A stretch of 64,000 nucleotides of DNA, taken from IMG/VR virus record IMGVR_UViG_3300028829_003504, positions 186,001 to 250,000 of that record, one strand, 5' to 3'. A program made the translations under genes and the position numbers. Of the stretch, positions 1 to 5,050 are shown one piece after another (within the stretch, counting starts at the first letter, position 1; each line of letters starts with the position of its first letter). The notes below the pieces were generated by a model. It ran no database searches. It saw only the letters and a list, made by a program, of their open reading frames with translations, and was not told the DNA's origin.

Positions 1-255
1 GAAGAGGCTCAGACTCTAGACTTTGAACGTGATATAACCTCAGGCAACCCCACTGTTATCTTACCTGCCCGTATAGGCGTATTAAATGTAGGAGATGTCA
101 TTATTATACCCGATAGAAACTACTCGTTGAAAATTACGGATGCTCCGCGTAAGCAATTAGCTGACCGAGTAATAATTGAATGGGCTGTTAATACTAGGAC
201 ATTGCAAACCAATGAGGCGTTACGGAATATCCATAAGGGATATAAGCTAAAGTAA
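1..255 (+). CDS. 3' end of a gene entering the window (hypothetical, possibly virion protein)
   Basis: Frame 1 open from base 1 to TAA at 253-255 (EEAQTLDFERD...HKGYKLK*). Confidence 0.75.
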   Translation, partial: EEAQTLDFERDITSGNPTVILPARIGVLNVGDVIIIPDRNYSLKITDAPRKQLADRVIIEWAVNTRTLQTNEALRNIHKGYKLK

Positions 256-573
256 ATCTAGATAATAAGAAATGATCTACAATAAACTGGTCATTTTTTG
301 GACGGTCAGGTTAAATAATTTTAGTTTGAAAAACCCCCACGCTTAGATTGAGCATATACGTACGCCTGTGTAGCATATAGGGCAGTATAGGTCGACTAAA
401 ACTAAATGGTTAATGTAATCAACCACTTACGATTTATTTTACACTAAAATTCAGGAAAAAGCCAACCCGGAATTGGCAGATATAGCATTCTACGTGGTTT
501 AGGGTATAGCAGAGTACTTCTACCGTACGCCGGGGTCTAGATCGAGGTTTCTAAAAAGTTGGTTTAGGGCATT

Positions 574-580
574 CTGTAAA
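574..580 (+). promoter_or_regulatory. CTGTAAA motif, putative phage promoter element upstream of the candidate ncRNA
   Basis: Same heptamer recurs 38-111 bp upstream of many gene starts in the window. Confidence 0.45.
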
Positions 581-589
581 GTGAGTGCA

Positions 590-960
590 ACGAGTATGAT
601 GTTCTAAGCCATCAGAAACAAAAGACCACAAGGGTCCAAAGAGAGAAAAAAGAAAGCACGATCAGAACGTCGAGCGGGGAACCCGCTTGACGACAAACGC
701 GATTAACAAAGAAACAATGCAAAACCCCGCAGACGATTACAACGATGCAAAGACCCTTGAGAAAACGGCGAGAAGGACCATTGCGCCCTTAAAAGGACCT
801 TCGGTTTTACCTATTAAAAGGAGATCTAAGTACCTTGGTTCTCAATAGACTAATGGATCGTTTTCGGTAATAGGTTTATTGTTTATTGGGAGGTTTAGTT
901 AAGAAAGAGATCGACCAAAGGTCTCCTCTTCCAACGGAGGTACCCTCCGACTATTATCTT
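590..960 (+). ncRNA. Candidate large structured non-coding RNA (boundaries approximate)
   Basis: No ORF >=60 aa. Hairpin 668-692 (11 bp, one G-U). Nested pairings 712-718/878-884, 722-726/873-877, 736-740/867-871, 741-746/857-862, 757-763/839-845. Hairpins 913-923 and 935-949. Confidence 0.5.
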
Positions 961-961
961 T

Positions 962-968
962 CTGTAAA
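962..968 (+). promoter_or_regulatory. CTGTAAA motif followed by GTATAAT, putative promoter of ORF 1009
   Basis: Recurring motif 47 bp upstream of the ATG. Confidence 0.5.
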
Positions 969-1008
969 GTATAATCATTAATATGATAATGATAATAGAG
1001 ATCTCCTT

Positions 1009-2115
1009 ATGGCTATTTCCCGCGAGCCCCGCGCTGCCTTCCCAAAACTCACACTGCAAGCAACACGCTCCCAGATTAAAGTACTACGCAGTATGATAAA
1101 GCGTGCCTCTGAAATATACGTATGGACTATTGAGAAACACCAGTCTAACTACTTCACTGATGATAGCCAGCTACCTATTTACATCGACAGACTCTACGCT
1201 AATGATCCACTTGAATGGTTTCCCAGAGAACTTTTCTTAAACATCTTACGTCGAGGTAGAATGCACTACTTATCCTCGCCTGATGCAAAAGCCCAAGTCC
1301 CCAGAGGCTGGAGCTTACCTTTCCAATTCAAAGACTTCAAAGTACGGTCATTAGGTATAGACTTTACCTTACTGGAAGAAGTTCCCCACCTTGAGAAAAC
1401 CTTTATACCCTCAACTAATACAAACAAACAATTAAAGTTAAGCGAAGCCATGACCACTGGTTGGTGTCTTTTAAAGTACACTAAATTTAATGACCAGCTC
1501 CGTATTACACACGAACGATTCCGTAATATGGGCATGCGCTCCGACGTAGTTGCAGAAGATACTATGTGTTACGGATCTATCTCAATAAGCACCAAGGAGC
1601 TAAAGCTACTGGAGGACACAGCTAAGATAATAGGACCTGTCCGTAAGATTATTATTAATAGTATGTTCGACCACCACGAAGCAACTGGTAAATACCCAAC
1701 ATGGAATACTATTAAGAAAGAGTTACCCTTGATTAAGCACCAACTAGACTCGTCCCAGTTAGAGTTGTACTCTGCGGCCATCAGTGCCTCTTTCTATCAT
1801 ACGGCTATGCAGGCCTTACATAAATTTCATACTGAGGGCGATGCTAAGTTCTGGTACAGCGCCTTGGATAGAGTTAGCTTGTTAGTCGAGACCCCTGCCA
1901 AATACCTAGAGCGCGGTTCTATACACATACCTAAATTTGCACGTAGACCCTACATGACCTATAAGCGCCAGCTCTACTTAAACATAGAGGAAACTGTAAA
2001 GATACCCCATGTTATCTGCTTGTATCTAAGTAGATCTAATAATGATATAGATCGCCACCGTATTAGGTTTGGTGTATATCCAACTGACCCAAATAGGTTT
2101 AATAATGTCATATAG
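1009..2115 (+). CDS. Tandem TnpB/Cas12f-like N-terminal (HTH_OrfB/WED-REC) domain protein lacking RuvC
   Basis: Half 1 KLTLQATRSQIKVL...ASEIYVW...Y and half 2 LLEDT...HEATGK...KELPLIK...GSIHIPKF match the spacing of the IS605 OrfB N-terminus. No zinc finger or RuvC II/III motifs. Confidence 0.5.
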   Translation: MAISREPRAAFPKLTLQATRSQIKVLRSMIKRASEIYVWTIEKHQSNYFTDDSQLPIYIDRLYANDPLEWFPRELFLNILRRGRMHYLSSPDAKAQVPRGWSLPFQFKDFKVRSLGIDFTLLEEVPHLEKTFIPSTNTNKQLKLSEAMTTGWCLLKYTKFNDQLRITHERFRNMGMRSDVVAEDTMCYGSISISTKELKLLEDTAKIIGPVRKIIINSMFDHHEATGKYPTWNTIKKELPLIKHQLDSSQLELYSAAISASFYHTAMQALHKFHTEGDAKFWYSALDRVSLLVETPAKYLERGSIHIPKFARRPYMTYKRQLYLNIEETVKIPHVICLYLSRSNNDIDRHRIRFGVYPTDPNRFNNVI

Positions 2116-2260
2116 AGAATGGCTAAATGAGTTAGGAACGCTCATACGAAAAAATACTACGAATAATCGTGGTTGGAAAAAGTGGGCTGACTGGAGAGAA
2201 TACTTTGATAATGATGCCTCACCTGAAGAAGCACTTGAAGACGCAGGAGTAATATCTTAA
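2105..2260 (+). CDS. Small hypothetical protein
   Basis: ATG at 2105 overlapping the end of the previous gene; TAATG coupling to the next. Confidence 0.65.
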   Translation: MSYREWLNELGTLIRKNTTNNRGWKKWADWREYFDNDASPEEALEDAGVIS

Positions 2261-2655
2261 TGAATACCGCAAAACTTTTAGTCGTAATCGATATCCATGA
2301 CTTGGTCGCCGACACACCTAGACTTGTCACAAGCGCTGCTGACTTAGTTGAGACATACGGAGGCACTGCACCTAAAGACAACCGTAGTTTCTGGGGTGCT
2401 ATCGAGGTCATCAATCATATCTCACCTGCCAGTATGATGTTTGTTATCAGCAGCGATAAGTTTGTTGACTACATGAATGACTGTAACAATAAACGTGAAA
2501 TGGAATTTACTTCCATCATGGCTCAGAACTTGAGTTACGATTATGGACAGAAGCAGAATCTTATTAGCTGCGTAGCCCGACTGGATGCAACCCAGTCACT
2601 ATTAAGTGATTTCGTATTAATGATAGACCTACCTGAGGAAAACCAAAATGGCTAA
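2260..2655 (+). CDS. Hypothetical protein
   Basis: 131-aa ORF coupled on both sides. Confidence 0.75.
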   Translation: MNTAKLLVVIDIHDLVADTPRLVTSAADLVETYGGTAPKDNRSFWGAIEVINHISPASMMFVISSDKFVDYMNDCNNKREMEFTSIMAQNLSYDYGQKQNLISCVARLDATQSLLSDFVLMIDLPEENQNG

Positions 2656-3718
2656 GACACAAGAGCTTTCAACCATAAAGAAGAAAACTAAGTTAACCAA
2701 GAAAGCTAAAACCTCTTTAGCTAATCAGGGTCCTTCTATTAAATACAGCAAAGACGACTACGTTATTATCAAAGCAAATGGTAAATATAAGTTAGGTACA
2801 GCGTTTGCTAAAGGCCGTTTGTTACTTGAAGAAGGCGTAGAGGATGATGATACATCTATTACTCTCGACTTTGAAGAAAACGATGTTGTGGCATGCCTAG
2901 GTAAGAATCCTCCAGTAGGCAAAGATGCCTTTGGATGTAAGCTTGAATTCTACGATCAGACATTTACCGATAAGCATTGGGGTCCCATTCATTTCTTCCG
3001 TAAGATTGAAGACGAACGTGAGATGAAATACCTCAAACAAGTTCTGAATAAGGCCTATAGCGTTTTATCTGAACATAAAGCCAGCAGATTCTTACCTCTT
3101 ACACGTACGGATCTGCGAATGGCTAAAGGTAAATATGCAGGTATGTATAGCTTCAATTACAAACGTGGTGACAAGATGACATTACGTCCTGTCGATATGA
3201 AAGATCGTAAGTATATGCTGTACGTTATCATCCATGAAGCTGGCCATGGTGTCTGGTACCGTTGTGTTCCATCTGACGTTAAAGTTATTTGGACTGACTT
3301 GTTCCACAAACGTGTTCGTCTGCATACTTCTACCGAGAAGCAGTTGAAGGCGATGGCTAAAGCCTTGGTTAGCTACGATGATTTTAAATCGTATGCCAAA
3401 GATGAATGTGACGAAGACGATAAGAAGGTTCTTAAAGAAGCTTTCGCCTACGTTAAACGTGTCCATAAGTTAAATGAGAAGCAGCTTGAAGCCTTAGTTA
3501 AAACTAAAGGCGGTAAAGCAATTCTAGATTATTGGCCTAAGAGTGCGGATGTTGGTTTAGTAAGCCCGGACGTAACTGAGTACAGTATGGAATCTGTTGA
3601 AGAATTCTTTGCCGAATCATTCGCGTACTTCCTGACTAAGAAGTCTTTACCTAAAGACATCACTAAAGAAATGGAACACACGCTTAAGAACTTAATTAAG
3701 GATTCTGAAGGTGGATAA
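2648..3718 (+). CDS. Zincin-like metallopeptidase (anthrax lethal factor-like catalytic motifs)
   Basis: HEAGH (HExxH) plus downstream YSMESVEEFFAESFAYF. Confidence 0.65.
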   Translation: MAKTQELSTIKKKTKLTKKAKTSLANQGPSIKYSKDDYVIIKANGKYKLGTAFAKGRLLLEEGVEDDDTSITLDFEENDVVACLGKNPPVGKDAFGCKLEFYDQTFTDKHWGPIHFFRKIEDEREMKYLKQVLNKAYSVLSEHKASRFLPLTRTDLRMAKGKYAGMYSFNYKRGDKMTLRPVDMKDRKYMLYVIIHEAGHGVWYRCVPSDVKVIWTDLFHKRVRLHTSTEKQLKAMAKALVSYDDFKSYAKDECDEDDKKVLKEAFAYVKRVHKLNEKQLEALVKTKGGKAILDYWPKSADVGLVSPDVTEYSMESVEEFFAESFAYFLTKKSLPKDITKEMEHTLKNLIKDSEGG

Positions 3719-4349
3719 TTTAATCGAGCAATCAAATGAAGACTGGGTATCTACACCTGACGTCAATCTCCCTAAGGTAAGAAAACCGAACGTAACTTTT
3801 ACAGAGACCGACAAGTCCAGTGTTAGACCTTGCGGCATGGATTTTTCCACACTGGAGCAACGTGTACTTGAAAAGGGTATGGGCGACCTAGTCGCATCAG
3901 GACGACGTTGTGGTAAATCGATTACCGCTGTTATACACCAAGCGACACTACTTAATAATAAGTACCAGATGCTTTATCACTACGGTCCTCGTAAAACTCC
4001 TGAACTGACTTACGTAGCCCTGAACACTGCCTTCAATAATCTAAGTAAGAATAGATTGCCTCGGGGTGTTGCCCGTAAGATTGCTAAAATAGAACGAGCG
4101 CAGTCGGTTAAGGTTAAAGAGGACCTACGCGTTCTAGAATTCTTGACCGAACGTAGAAAACAATTCATGTTACAGAAACCTATCTGCATCTGCGGTAGTA
4201 ATCAAGTAGAACTCCTCTCGGTTTCTGAACACGGTTCGTGGAAGTGTCGCTCTTGCTTATCTAGATGGCGCACTACCATTACTGCTCGGCTTGTTGTTGA
4301 GCGTCCAGCTTACGAAATAATAGACGAGGTCCAAAAATGGTTAATATAG
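3711..4349 (+). CDS. Hypothetical protein with C-terminal zinc ribbon
   Basis: CICGS...WKCRSC. Confidence 0.6.
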   Translation: MDNLIEQSNEDWVSTPDVNLPKVRKPNVTFTETDKSSVRPCGMDFSTLEQRVLEKGMGDLVASGRRCGKSITAVIHQATLLNNKYQMLYHYGPRKTPELTYVALNTAFNNLSKNRLPRGVARKIAKIERAQSVKVKEDLRVLEFLTERRKQFMLQKPICICGSNQVELLSVSEHGSWKCRSCLSRWRTTITARLVVERPAYEIIDEVQKWLI

Positions 4350-5050
4350 ATATTCTTAATTGCAGTCCTTATGATCTATTTAGATACTATAGTGTGTTCT
4401 TTGAAACAAGTGACACTAAGATACCTTTAGTTGAAGGTAAACCTATGTTGTTGCTTTATATGGGTTCTCAATGTAAGATTGACCAAGCATTGCCTAGACC
4501 TATAACAGGAAAGCCTGGCGTGTTTACTATGGAACTACCTAGCATGAAAATCTTTGACTTACGTAAGCTTGCCGAAGAGTACTACATGTTCGGTATATTC
4601 TTTAGCAGGAACATAATGAATGCTCCCGAGGAATTGTTCGTCCGTAATCACACCGCCCAACTCGATAAATACTTAGAGGCATTCGCTGACTGCCCTCGCT
4701 GGACATACAACTCGGTACTAGGCCAAAAGAACATGACGCCTCCTATACTACCTGCAAATATGGCTTTAACTAGTACAAATAGACTTAAAGCCTTTGCTAT
4801 GTGTATGGAAGATGATAAACCTATGCACTTACAGGCTCAGGTTGGGGTTAATCAACACTGGCAGATGGGAGGACATATATTCAATTCTGACAAAGATGCT
4901 ATCTACGGCATAGCTTTAAGGCATCCACAAGCATCCACTCAACTTTCAGTACCTCTAAGTTGGTTATCCGATAAAACTAACCAAACCAACCCTGATAAAA
5001 TTATTGAGACTATTTCAATTGAAATGCAAGGAGGTATATGTGAAGATTAA
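4337..5050 (+). CDS. Hypothetical protein
   Basis: 237-aa ORF with GAGG RBS. Confidence 0.75.
   Translation: MVNIDILNCSPYDLFRYYSVFFETSDTKIPLVEGKPMLLLYMGSQCKIDQALPRPITGKPGVFTMELPSMKIFDLRKLAEEYYMFGIFFSRNIMNAPEELFVRNHTAQLDKYLEAFADCPRWTYNSVLGQKNMTPPILPANMALTSTNRLKAFAMCMEDDKPMHLQAQVGVNQHWQMGGHIFNSDKDAIYGIALRHPQASTQLSVPLSWLSDKTNQTNPDKIIETISIEMQGGICED

Follow-up and report, generated by a model that had tools for sequence, protein, structure and literature searches.

A few uncultured jumbo phages encode a protein predicted to consist of two copies of the nucleic-acid-recognition half of the RNA-guided nuclease TnpB/Cas12f, with no cutting domain, and its gene is placed directly behind a conserved non-coding stretch of about 390 bases that appears to fold. 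We found no description of this architecture, and it may be a new kind of non-cutting regulator. All coordinates refer to the window, i.e., the whole 64,000-nt stretch of DNA that was analysed. A sequence-only reading had proposed here a tandem TnpB/Cas12f-like protein without RuvC, preceded by a structured non-coding RNA, both forming an RNA-protein system. What that reading had seen in the sequence was confirmed. Its interpretation was only partly supported, since the evidence favours the protein part whereas the partnership with the RNA remains unproven.

A predicted tandem of TnpB-like recognition modules

The open reading frame (P0001) and its parts are as follows.
1009..2115 (+): ORF of 368 aa starting with ATG, basic (K+R 53 against D+E 39), a predicted tandem of two TnpB-like WED+REC modules with no RuvC domain and no zinc finger.
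1009..1563 (+): half 1 (aa 1-185), strand, three helices, four strands, one helix, two strands; a WED+REC-like module.
1516..1560 (+): predicted disordered linker (aa 170-184) between the two modules.
1564..2112 (+): half 2 (aa 186-368), strand, four helices, three strands, one helix, two strands with a short helix between them; a WED+REC-like module that ends where RuvC-I would begin in TnpB.

The motifs on which the sequence-only reading was based are all present with the proposed spacing: K13..L16..T19..Q22...L26......A33...Y37.W39........Y48 in half 1, and LLEDT (200-204), EATGK (224-228), KELPLIK (237-243) and GSIHIPKF (303-310) in half 2. The ORF is a real gene, with five homologues at 38-62% identity, and identity at the three codon positions between the window and the related phage contig L003 is 0.68/0.81/0.43, as expected for a coding sequence under purifying selection. 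The family is small: searches of 5.8 billion and 1.8 billion proteins found only three members, two more came from the genomic contexts of the upstream neighbour, and a scan of IMG/VR with the family profile added none. Neither tblastn of the ORF nor megablast of window positions 1-4000 against 50,697 phage records gave a match.

HMMER searches of the protein and of all family members against Pfam, PHROGs, NCBIfam and PDB sequences found no known family. No Pfam or NCBIfam family was returned at E up to 10 for any of the five members, including PF12323, PF01385, PF07282 and the NCBIfam TnpB models, and the PDB sequence profile search gave no TnpB, its best hit being TrmL at E 0.14, which we took as chance. 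ESM Atlas look-alikes of the whole protein and of both halves scored 0.39 or less and were uninformative, and the ESM Atlas model itself was poor (pLDDT 0.37).

We turned to structure prediction. The AlphaFold2 model of the whole protein (pLDDT 77.2) shows two domains of the same topology joined by the linker, whose pLDDT is below 50, although the relative orientation of the domains is uncertain (pTM 0.52). Half 1 modelled alone reached pLDDT 83.5 and pTM 0.81. When the whole model was compared with the PDB by Foldseek, the top 33 hits were all TnpB, Cas12f, Fanzor2, Cas12k, Cas12n, TranC, Cas12l or Cas12p; the best was 8ex9_A, ISDra2 TnpB with RuvC unresolved (E 1.3e-4, TMt 0.61). With half 1 alone the top 19 hits were all Cas12f, TnpB, Fanzor2, Cas12k, Cas12n or TranC (TMq 0.5-0.62). 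Across these searches the top chains had probability 1.0 and TM 0.5-0.62 over about 185 columns. Since the whole-model hit to 8ex9_A is better than the one given by half 1 to the same chain (E 1.4e-2, TMt 0.56), we infer that it comes from half 2. Foldseek against BFVD put viral TnpB/Fanzor "transposases" at the top, and uncharacterised proteins of Dickeya phage JA11 and Erwinia phage Yoloswag also gave BFVD hits.

Profile-profile alignment with hhalign placed each half in register on the TnpB N-terminus. Residues 13-71 align to TnpB 8-71 (score 31.9) and residues 194-311 to TnpB 14-133 over 118 columns, ending at the I.IPK.G / ri.LpK.G strand (score 31.1), whereas 150 column shuffles gave a mean of 13 and a maximum of 24, none of them reaching either score. 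In contrast, the two halves are not detectably similar to each other in sequence (hhalign probability 0.06% or less), and an internal repeat at that level was rejected.

It could be argued that the TnpB resemblance is spurious, the protein being an unrelated alpha/beta phage protein modelled from a very shallow alignment, with profile matches that reflect a common strand-helix pattern. Indeed there is no HMMER hit, the models rest on only five sequences, the Foldseek E-values are modest (1e-4 to 1e-2), and one unrelated ORF of the window (4337-5050) reached an hhalign score of 29 on a 32-column stretch, meaning that the real-protein null has a tail. However, two independent methods agree for two independent halves, the Foldseek lists contain only this superfamily before dropping to probability 0.05 or less, and the alignments are in register from the first strand of TnpB. 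We therefore consider this possibility unlikely.

The nuclease parts are missing. The protein ends right after the WED strands, the alignments stop at or before TnpB column 134, and no RuvC-like segment was found in the ORF or in the nine ORFs downstream, which rules against a split TnpB with RuvC encoded separately. There are only 3 Cys and no CxxC motif. No Y1 transposase (TnpA) family is on record for the neighbouring genes, no IS ends were seen, the 3' end of the gene abuts coding genes, and no Rfam family matched in 1000-2700, where a 3' omega/reRNA would be expected. TnpB genes are common in phages (430 records match insQ), but a decaying IS605-type tnpB that has lost its 3' half is very unlikely, as the ORF is conserved full-length, without frameshifts, at the same genomic position in five diverged phages with a coding pattern of substitution, and its recognition module is doubled; neither variable truncations nor intact tnpB copies with IS ends were seen at this site in relatives.

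The non-coding region upstream of the ORF

The elements found upstream of the ORF are the following.
398..445 (+): conserved upstream block (AAACTAAAT.GG ... TATTTT), a possible promoter or other DNA site.
557..948 (+): candidate structured RNA, either a separate ncRNA or the folded leader of the ORF mRNA.
557..566 (+): 5' arm of a long-range helix, inside the conserved block 559-600.
668..692 (+): hairpin H1, 11 bp with a GAA loop in the window.
785..798 (+): small hairpin h4.
854..865 (+): small hairpin h5.
890..900 (+): 3' arm of the long-range helix, just 5' of hairpin H2.
902..932 (+): hairpin H2 (GGAAAGAG.TCGACCAAAGGTCTCCTCTTCC), with positions 911-932 invariant in four phages.
934..948 (+): terminator-like hairpin CGGAGG-TAC-CCTCCG followed by a U-rich tail.

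Four of the five phages with the ORF (the window and the contigs L003, L010 and L011) keep this non-coding region with conserved blocks. The conserved structured part runs from about 557 to 948, slightly wider than the 574/590-960 of the sequence-only reading. No ORF in it is conserved at the protein level, including the small ORFs 687-848 and 886-981. The region folds better than shuffled sequences on the + strand (z -3.0, 0 of 100 shuffles), compared with z -1.5 on the - strand, and RNAalifold gave 46 pairs, 11 of them with compensatory changes. The 22-nt run 911-932 is the only four-way invariant run of 8 nt or more, although third codon positions of the ORF are saturated (three-way invariance of only 18%). 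It is unique in the window; scans of public collections with parts of this block found only copies of this same phage plus one chance hit in a Planctomycete MAG, and, taken together, the DNA scans of the collections with the invariant blocks returned only the same phage plus two chance hits (records L007 and L023).

We then looked at each helix in the four-phage alignment. In the long-range helix (557-566 with 890-900) 38 of 40 cells are paired, with 12 extra pair types and four different pair types at one column, whereas slid controls gave 10-25 and none of 56,736 ungapped 10-column helices in the alignment reached 37 paired cells. Sixteen of the paired cells are G-U, which would be A-C mismatches on the - strand. 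A related 5' block is found in contig L013. H1 is kept in the four phages (32 of 36 cells paired, 6 extra pair types); L003 changes the top pair G-C to U-A and L010 has a longer hairpin at the same place. For h4, 18 of 20 cells are paired with 4 extra pair types, and for h5, 15 of 16 with 6 extra pair types, many of them G-U. The role of the terminator-like hairpin is uncertain: L003 has a C-G to A-U change, but the hairpin is not kept in L010 or L011.

Block 398-445 is conserved in the four phages, and its core is also present in L015, a relative that lacks the ORF; no sigma-70-type promoter was called on the + strand. The block 559-600 was considered as a repeated phage promoter, but it is unique in the window, CTGTAAAG occurs 7 times against 3.5 expected, and the block instead forms one arm of the covarying helix. 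No iterons and no CRISPR-like array or other multi-copy direct-repeat family were found within 200-1100. Rfam 15, which includes HEARO and the IS605-orfB motifs, gave no hit at gathering score in the 64-kb window, only chance-level hits at E of 1 or more in 200-1100, and none in L003, L010 or L011.

Nothing shows that this candidate RNA is a ligand or a guide of the protein. No guide-like match to the rest of the window was found; shared 13-mers between 256-1008 and the rest of the window are at chance level (3 found, about 1.4 expected). The fifth phage, that of member P0003, has only about 350 nt upstream and lacks the 3' domain with the H2 block, and relatives without the ORF, L015 and L016, also have a large gap at this position (893 and 1143 nt, respectively). 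In addition, the guide RNA of TnpB-type proteins is bound largely through RuvC plus WED (bioRxiv 10.64898/2026.09.22.753285), which makes canonical guide binding by a protein without RuvC doubtful.

These observations are also compatible with a protein that works without any RNA, each WED/REC module reading a short double-stranded DNA motif as the TAM is read in TnpB, by WED+REC (PMC10097598). The tandem would then act like a covalent dimeric transcription factor or replication-origin binder, and the upstream region would be the promoter, leader or origin region of the gene block. The gap lies 1.3 kb from the switch of gene orientation, phage NCTB has its record origin just downstream of this position, and the invariant blocks could equally be DNA sites. 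However, the compensatory changes and the many G-U pairs in the long-range helix and H1 fit a + strand RNA better than a DNA site, and iteron-like repeats are absent. We regard this alternative as possible but less likely than the one given below.

Relation to known systems

Like ISDra2 TnpB (PDB 8ex9, 8exa, 8h1j, 8bf8), each half has the WED+REC topology and aligns from the first strand and helix (K.rl.Pt..Q...l......R..yN), the alignment continuing for half 2 to the A.k.FF helix and the ri.LpK.G strand, but the lobe is present twice in one chain, and the RuvC and zinc-finger (TNB) domains are absent. Cas12f, an asymmetric homodimer on one guide RNA (PDB 9i8y, 8dzj, 8j12, 7wju), gave the best TM-scores for half 1 (TMq 0.61-0.62); by analogy only, the two recognition lobes of its functional unit would here be joined covalently, with no nuclease lobe, no repeat array within 200-1100 and no Rfam hit for a tracrRNA next to the gene. 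The nuclease-dead TldR repressors (bioRxiv 10.1101/2023.11.30.569447 and 10.64898/2026.09.22.753285) are domesticated TnpB relatives, some of them phage-borne, that regulate without cleavage. They keep a degenerate RuvC domain that holds the guide RNA together with WED, losing at most RuvC-III (PMC10691335), whereas here the whole lobe is gone, WED+REC is duplicated and no guide was identified. As with the IscB omega-RNA (HEARO), a long structured RNA candidate lies immediately 5' of the protein gene, but the protein is unrelated to IscB.

The closest cultured relatives of the genome are Alexandravirus-like jumbo phages (Phage NCTB, Erwinia pEa_SNUABM_3, Dickeya AD1/JA11), with a DNA polymerase 50-53% identical and an upstream protein 34-36% identical. 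The order primase, upstream protein, gap, then peptidase and clamp loader is shared with AD1, and only parts of it were seen in the others. None has a sequence homologue of the ORF. The gene at the same position in AD1, gp214, has no detectable similarity to the family or to TnpB, and its annotated 968-nt gap is mostly an unannotated in-frame extension of that gene.

A possible nuclease-free regulator

Our preferred explanation, to which we give a probability of about 0.45, is that the ORF encodes a protein derived from the TnpB/Cas12f lineage that has kept only the recognition lobe, has it twice in tandem, and has completely lost the RuvC nuclease and the zinc-finger lobe. The analysis itself establishes the fold and profile similarity of both halves to TnpB/Cas12f, the absence of the nuclease parts, purifying selection on the gene, its fixed position at the head of the replication and nucleotide-metabolism gene block of a small clade of jumbo phages, and the conserved 5' non-coding region folding on the + strand. 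It is by inference that we propose a nuclease-free nucleic-acid binder acting as a regulator, whose two WED/REC clefts would hold nucleic acid much as the two protomers of a Cas12f dimer do; WED+REC read the TAM and hold the heteroduplex, and in Cas12f a second protomer contacts the guide RNA scaffold (PMC10097598 and the PDB entries of the whole-model search). In this view the most likely ligand would be the structured RNA encoded directly upstream, either as the leader of its own mRNA (autoregulation) or as a separate scaffold RNA, short TAM-like DNA motifs being the second possibility.

An anti-defence decoy, in which the recognition lobes would soak up guide RNAs of host TnpB/Cas12-type systems or occupy their TAM/PAM sites, the upstream RNA being unrelated or an RNA decoy, would fit the position among early or replication genes and the similarity to the guide- and TAM-binding lobe without the nuclease. 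This idea rests on inference only, no host system having been identified, and it is unlikely, as the family is tiny (five phages) and its fixed syntenic position looks more like that of a core regulator. A more far-reaching hypothesis, doubtful but not excluded, is a new RNA-protein system of jumbo phages, in which the covalent pseudo-dimer would bind its own dedicated RNA of about 390 nt and use it as a scaffold or guide to occupy nucleic-acid targets without cutting them, an RNA-dependent regulator that arose by a route different from TldR and Cas12k.

Every exapted TnpB/Cas12 relative that we found described, such as TldR, Cas12k, Cas12m and the sigma- and SpoIIE-associated TnpBs, keeps at least a degenerate RuvC lobe (PMC10691335; bioRxiv 10.64898/2026.09.22.753285). 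A natural protein that keeps only the recognition lobe, in duplicate, would show that WED+REC is a self-sufficient, evolvable nucleic-acid-binding module and would add a new end-point to TnpB domestication; if it binds RNA or short DNA motifs specifically, it could also offer a very small scaffold for nuclease-free targeting. The conserved upstream element is also a candidate new structured RNA of jumbo phages, in which almost no non-coding RNAs are known.

The phage and the conserved ORF

All genes in the window lie on the + strand, and the window belongs to a contig of about 262 kb (IMGVR_UViG_3300028829_003504). Its genes include a clamp loader, SbcCD, DHFR, a family A DNA polymerase, SNF2-type helicases and a tail sheath, and it is therefore a jumbo myovirus-type phage. 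The closest cultured relatives are Phage NCTB and the Alexandravirus phages of Erwinia and Dickeya, whose DNA polymerase is 50-53% identical, whereas no DNA-level match exists in 50,697 phage records.

The ORF under study (1009-2115, 368 aa) is as the sequence-only reading had described it, and every motif reported there was found at the spacing it had given. Searches of 5.8 and 1.8 billion proteins found only two homologues, P0002 (62% identical, on a 311-kb contig) and P0003 (38%). We followed the better-conserved upstream neighbour, a 406-aa protein with 11 homologues, to its contigs, and this gave two more members: one in contig L011 (4436-5551, 46%) and a partial one in contig L010 (51%). 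The substitution pattern is that of a coding gene. Compared with the related phage contig L003, identity at codon positions 1, 2 and 3 is 0.68, 0.81 and 0.43, and third positions are near saturation. The protein is basic and has no CxxC motif.

Both ends of the ORF show further DNA-level conservation. The first 26 nt (1009-1034, ATGGCT.TT.CCCGCG..CC.CGC) are unusually conserved in all four phages that align here (window, L003, L010 and L011) and can form a small CGCG/CGCG hairpin just after the start codon, which might affect translation initiation. At the other end (window 2075-2114; L003 7067-7260), the last 13 codons and the ATG (2105) of the overlapping 51-aa gene are 98% identical to L003, with no synonymous change. 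L003 carries two copies of that small gene, the first of them apparently degenerate.

Predicted fold and comparison with TnpB

HMMER searches against Pfam, PHROGs, NCBIfam and PDB sequences, with single sequences and with family profiles, returned no family, and PF12323, PF01385 and PF07282 did not match. By that standard the proposed relationship to TnpB fails. In contrast, the predicted structure points to this superfamily. An AlphaFold2 model built on the five-sequence alignment has a mean pLDDT of 77.2 and shows a disordered stretch at residues 170-184 between two domains of the same topology (one strand, three or four helices, a small sheet with an inserted helix, and two final strands). 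When this model was compared with the PDB by Foldseek, ranks 1-33 were all TnpB, Cas12f, Fanzor2, Cas12k, Cas12n, TranC, Cas12l or Cas12p. The best hit is 8ex9_A, the ISDra2 TnpB structure in which only WED+REC is resolved (E 1.3e-4, probability 1.0, TMt 0.61, 185 columns). Against BFVD, viral TnpB/Fanzor 'transposases' come first. Two uncharacterised proteins of cultured jumbo phages from the related group, A0A386K639 (Dickeya phage JA11, 362 aa) and A0A1S6L3E0 (Erwinia phage Yoloswag, 325 aa), also give weak fold matches to the model in BFVD (E 0.03-0.09, about 195 columns) and may be further nuclease-less TnpB-like proteins in tractable phages.

Half 1 was then modelled alone (pLDDT 83.5, pTM 0.81), and again only this superfamily appears in its top 19 hits, with TMq values of 0.61-0.62 to SpCas12f1 and 0.51-0.52 to ISDra2 TnpB, after which the probability drops to 0.05. 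The whole model hits 8ex9_A about 100 times better (E 1.3e-4, TMt 0.61) than half 1 alone does (E 1.4e-2, TMt 0.56). We therefore infer, from this comparison only, that the whole-model hit comes from half 2.

As an independent profile test, a TnpB alignment was built from E. coli insQ and eight phage TnpBs taken from annotated records. In hhalign, half 1 residues 13-71 align to TnpB columns 8-71 and half 2 residues 194-311 to columns 14-133. Both alignments start at the first strand and helix of TnpB, and that of half 2 runs through the A.k.FF helix to the ri.LpK.G strand, which corresponds to the GSIHIPKF segment that the sequence-only reading had singled out. The scores are 31.9 and 31.1, whereas column shuffles give a mean of 13, a standard deviation of 2.4 and a maximum of 24; none of 150 shuffles reaches the real score. 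Ninety real 185-aa segments of other window proteins give a mean of 12.4, with one outlier of 29.1, so the null distribution has a tail. This outlier is a 32-column match (P 5e-4) in a 237-aa ORF four genes downstream (4337-5050), where residues 101-132, FVRNHTAQLDKYLEAFADCPRWTYNSVL, align to the TnpB N-terminal strand-helix motif; it is either a second OrfB-N-like element in this phage or a chance match that calibrates the null. The two halves do not match each other, and no RuvC or TNB match exists in the ORF or in nine downstream ORFs. A 212-aa protein (3711-4349, phrog_1474) with a C-terminal CxC...CxxC zinc-ribbon-like motif aligns only trivially to the TnpB zinc finger (hhalign probability 0.7%). 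Taken together, these data lead us to put a probability of about 0.8 on the protein being a tandem of TnpB-type WED+REC lobes without the nuclease lobe.

The upstream non-coding region

Between the upstream gene, which ends at 255, and the ORF lie 753 nt with no conserved ORF. Four phages (window, L003, L010 and L011) align over this region, and although most of it is at near-random identity, there are sharp islands. The elements considered on the + strand are as follows.

557-566 with 890-900 (+): candidate long-range helix
668-692 (+): candidate hairpin H1
785-798 (+): candidate small hairpin h4
854-865 (+): candidate small hairpin h5
902-932 (+): conserved block, candidate hairpin H2
934-948 (+): terminator-like hairpin

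The block 902-932 contains a 22-nt run invariant in all four phages. It is the only such run, while only 18% of third codon positions in the ORF are 3-way invariant. RNAalifold on the + strand finds 46 pairs, 11 of them with compensatory changes. We also counted pairs directly. In the long-range helix, 38 of 40 cells are paired, with 12 extra pair types; slid controls give 10-25, and none of 56,736 ungapped 10-column helices is as good. The counts are 32 of 36 cells for H1, 18 of 20 for h4 and 15 of 16 for h5. H2 is fully paired but invariant, and thus says nothing either way about pairing. Sixteen G-U cells in the long-range helix and the G-U pairs of H1 favour the + strand, as do the single-sequence z-scores (-3.0 against -1.5); however, the alifold energies of the two strands are similar (-28.3 and -27.8). 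No Rfam family matches. A conserved, folded + strand RNA of about 390 nt is therefore likely, although four sequences are too few for a formal covariation test.

Relation of the upstream region to the protein

We next asked whether this RNA belongs to the protein. All four full-length loci with the ORF have it, and the fifth phage keeps the 5' block. The locus of this fifth phage was obtained by joining two contigs from the same JGI sample, L013 (8311-8699) and L006 (1-60), which overlap through a 27-nt tandem repeat that includes the start codon of P0003; this explains the assembly break. L013 also has three 27-nt tandem repeats right after the upstream gene. However, the fifth phage has only about 350 nt upstream and no H2, and two relatives that lack the ORF, L015 (1743-2636) and L016 (9402-10545), still have gaps of 893 and 1143 nt at the same position, with almost no shared sequence. 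The terminator-like hairpin 934-948 is not kept in L010 or L011, so a separate transcript is not established. No guide-like match to the window was found, and in TnpB/TldR the guide scaffold is held by RuvC plus WED.

A large non-coding gap after the conserved upstream protein and a small ORF is a feature of the whole phage group, including members without the ORF family. In Phage NCTB (L035, 7030-7606) the depositors put the record origin there, and the gap may mark an origin of replication or a major regulatory region. In Dickeya phage AD1 (L037, 13426-14394), the annotated 968-nt gap upstream of gp214 contains a stop-free, in-frame stretch of 195 codons; gp214 is therefore probably annotated too short (compare the 525-aa gene at the matching position in Erwinia phage pEa_SNUABM_3).

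Altogether, the observation made from the sequence alone is confirmed. The interpretation attached to it, a tandem of TnpB/Cas12f-like recognition modules possibly partnered with the adjacent structured RNA, is supported in part: its protein side rests on two independent kinds of evidence, and the RNA is probably real as a structured element, but the partnership of the two and any guide function are inferred and remain hypotheses. Full-text literature searches, in a library that is incomplete so that their silence is only absence of evidence, found nuclease-dead and C-terminally truncated TnpB derivatives (TldR and others) but no RuvC-less or tandem WED+REC protein. Exapted TnpBs are thus already known, and what is new here is one predicted to lack the nuclease lobe and to carry the WED+REC lobe in tandem, which would be of interest for the evolution of RNA-guided systems.
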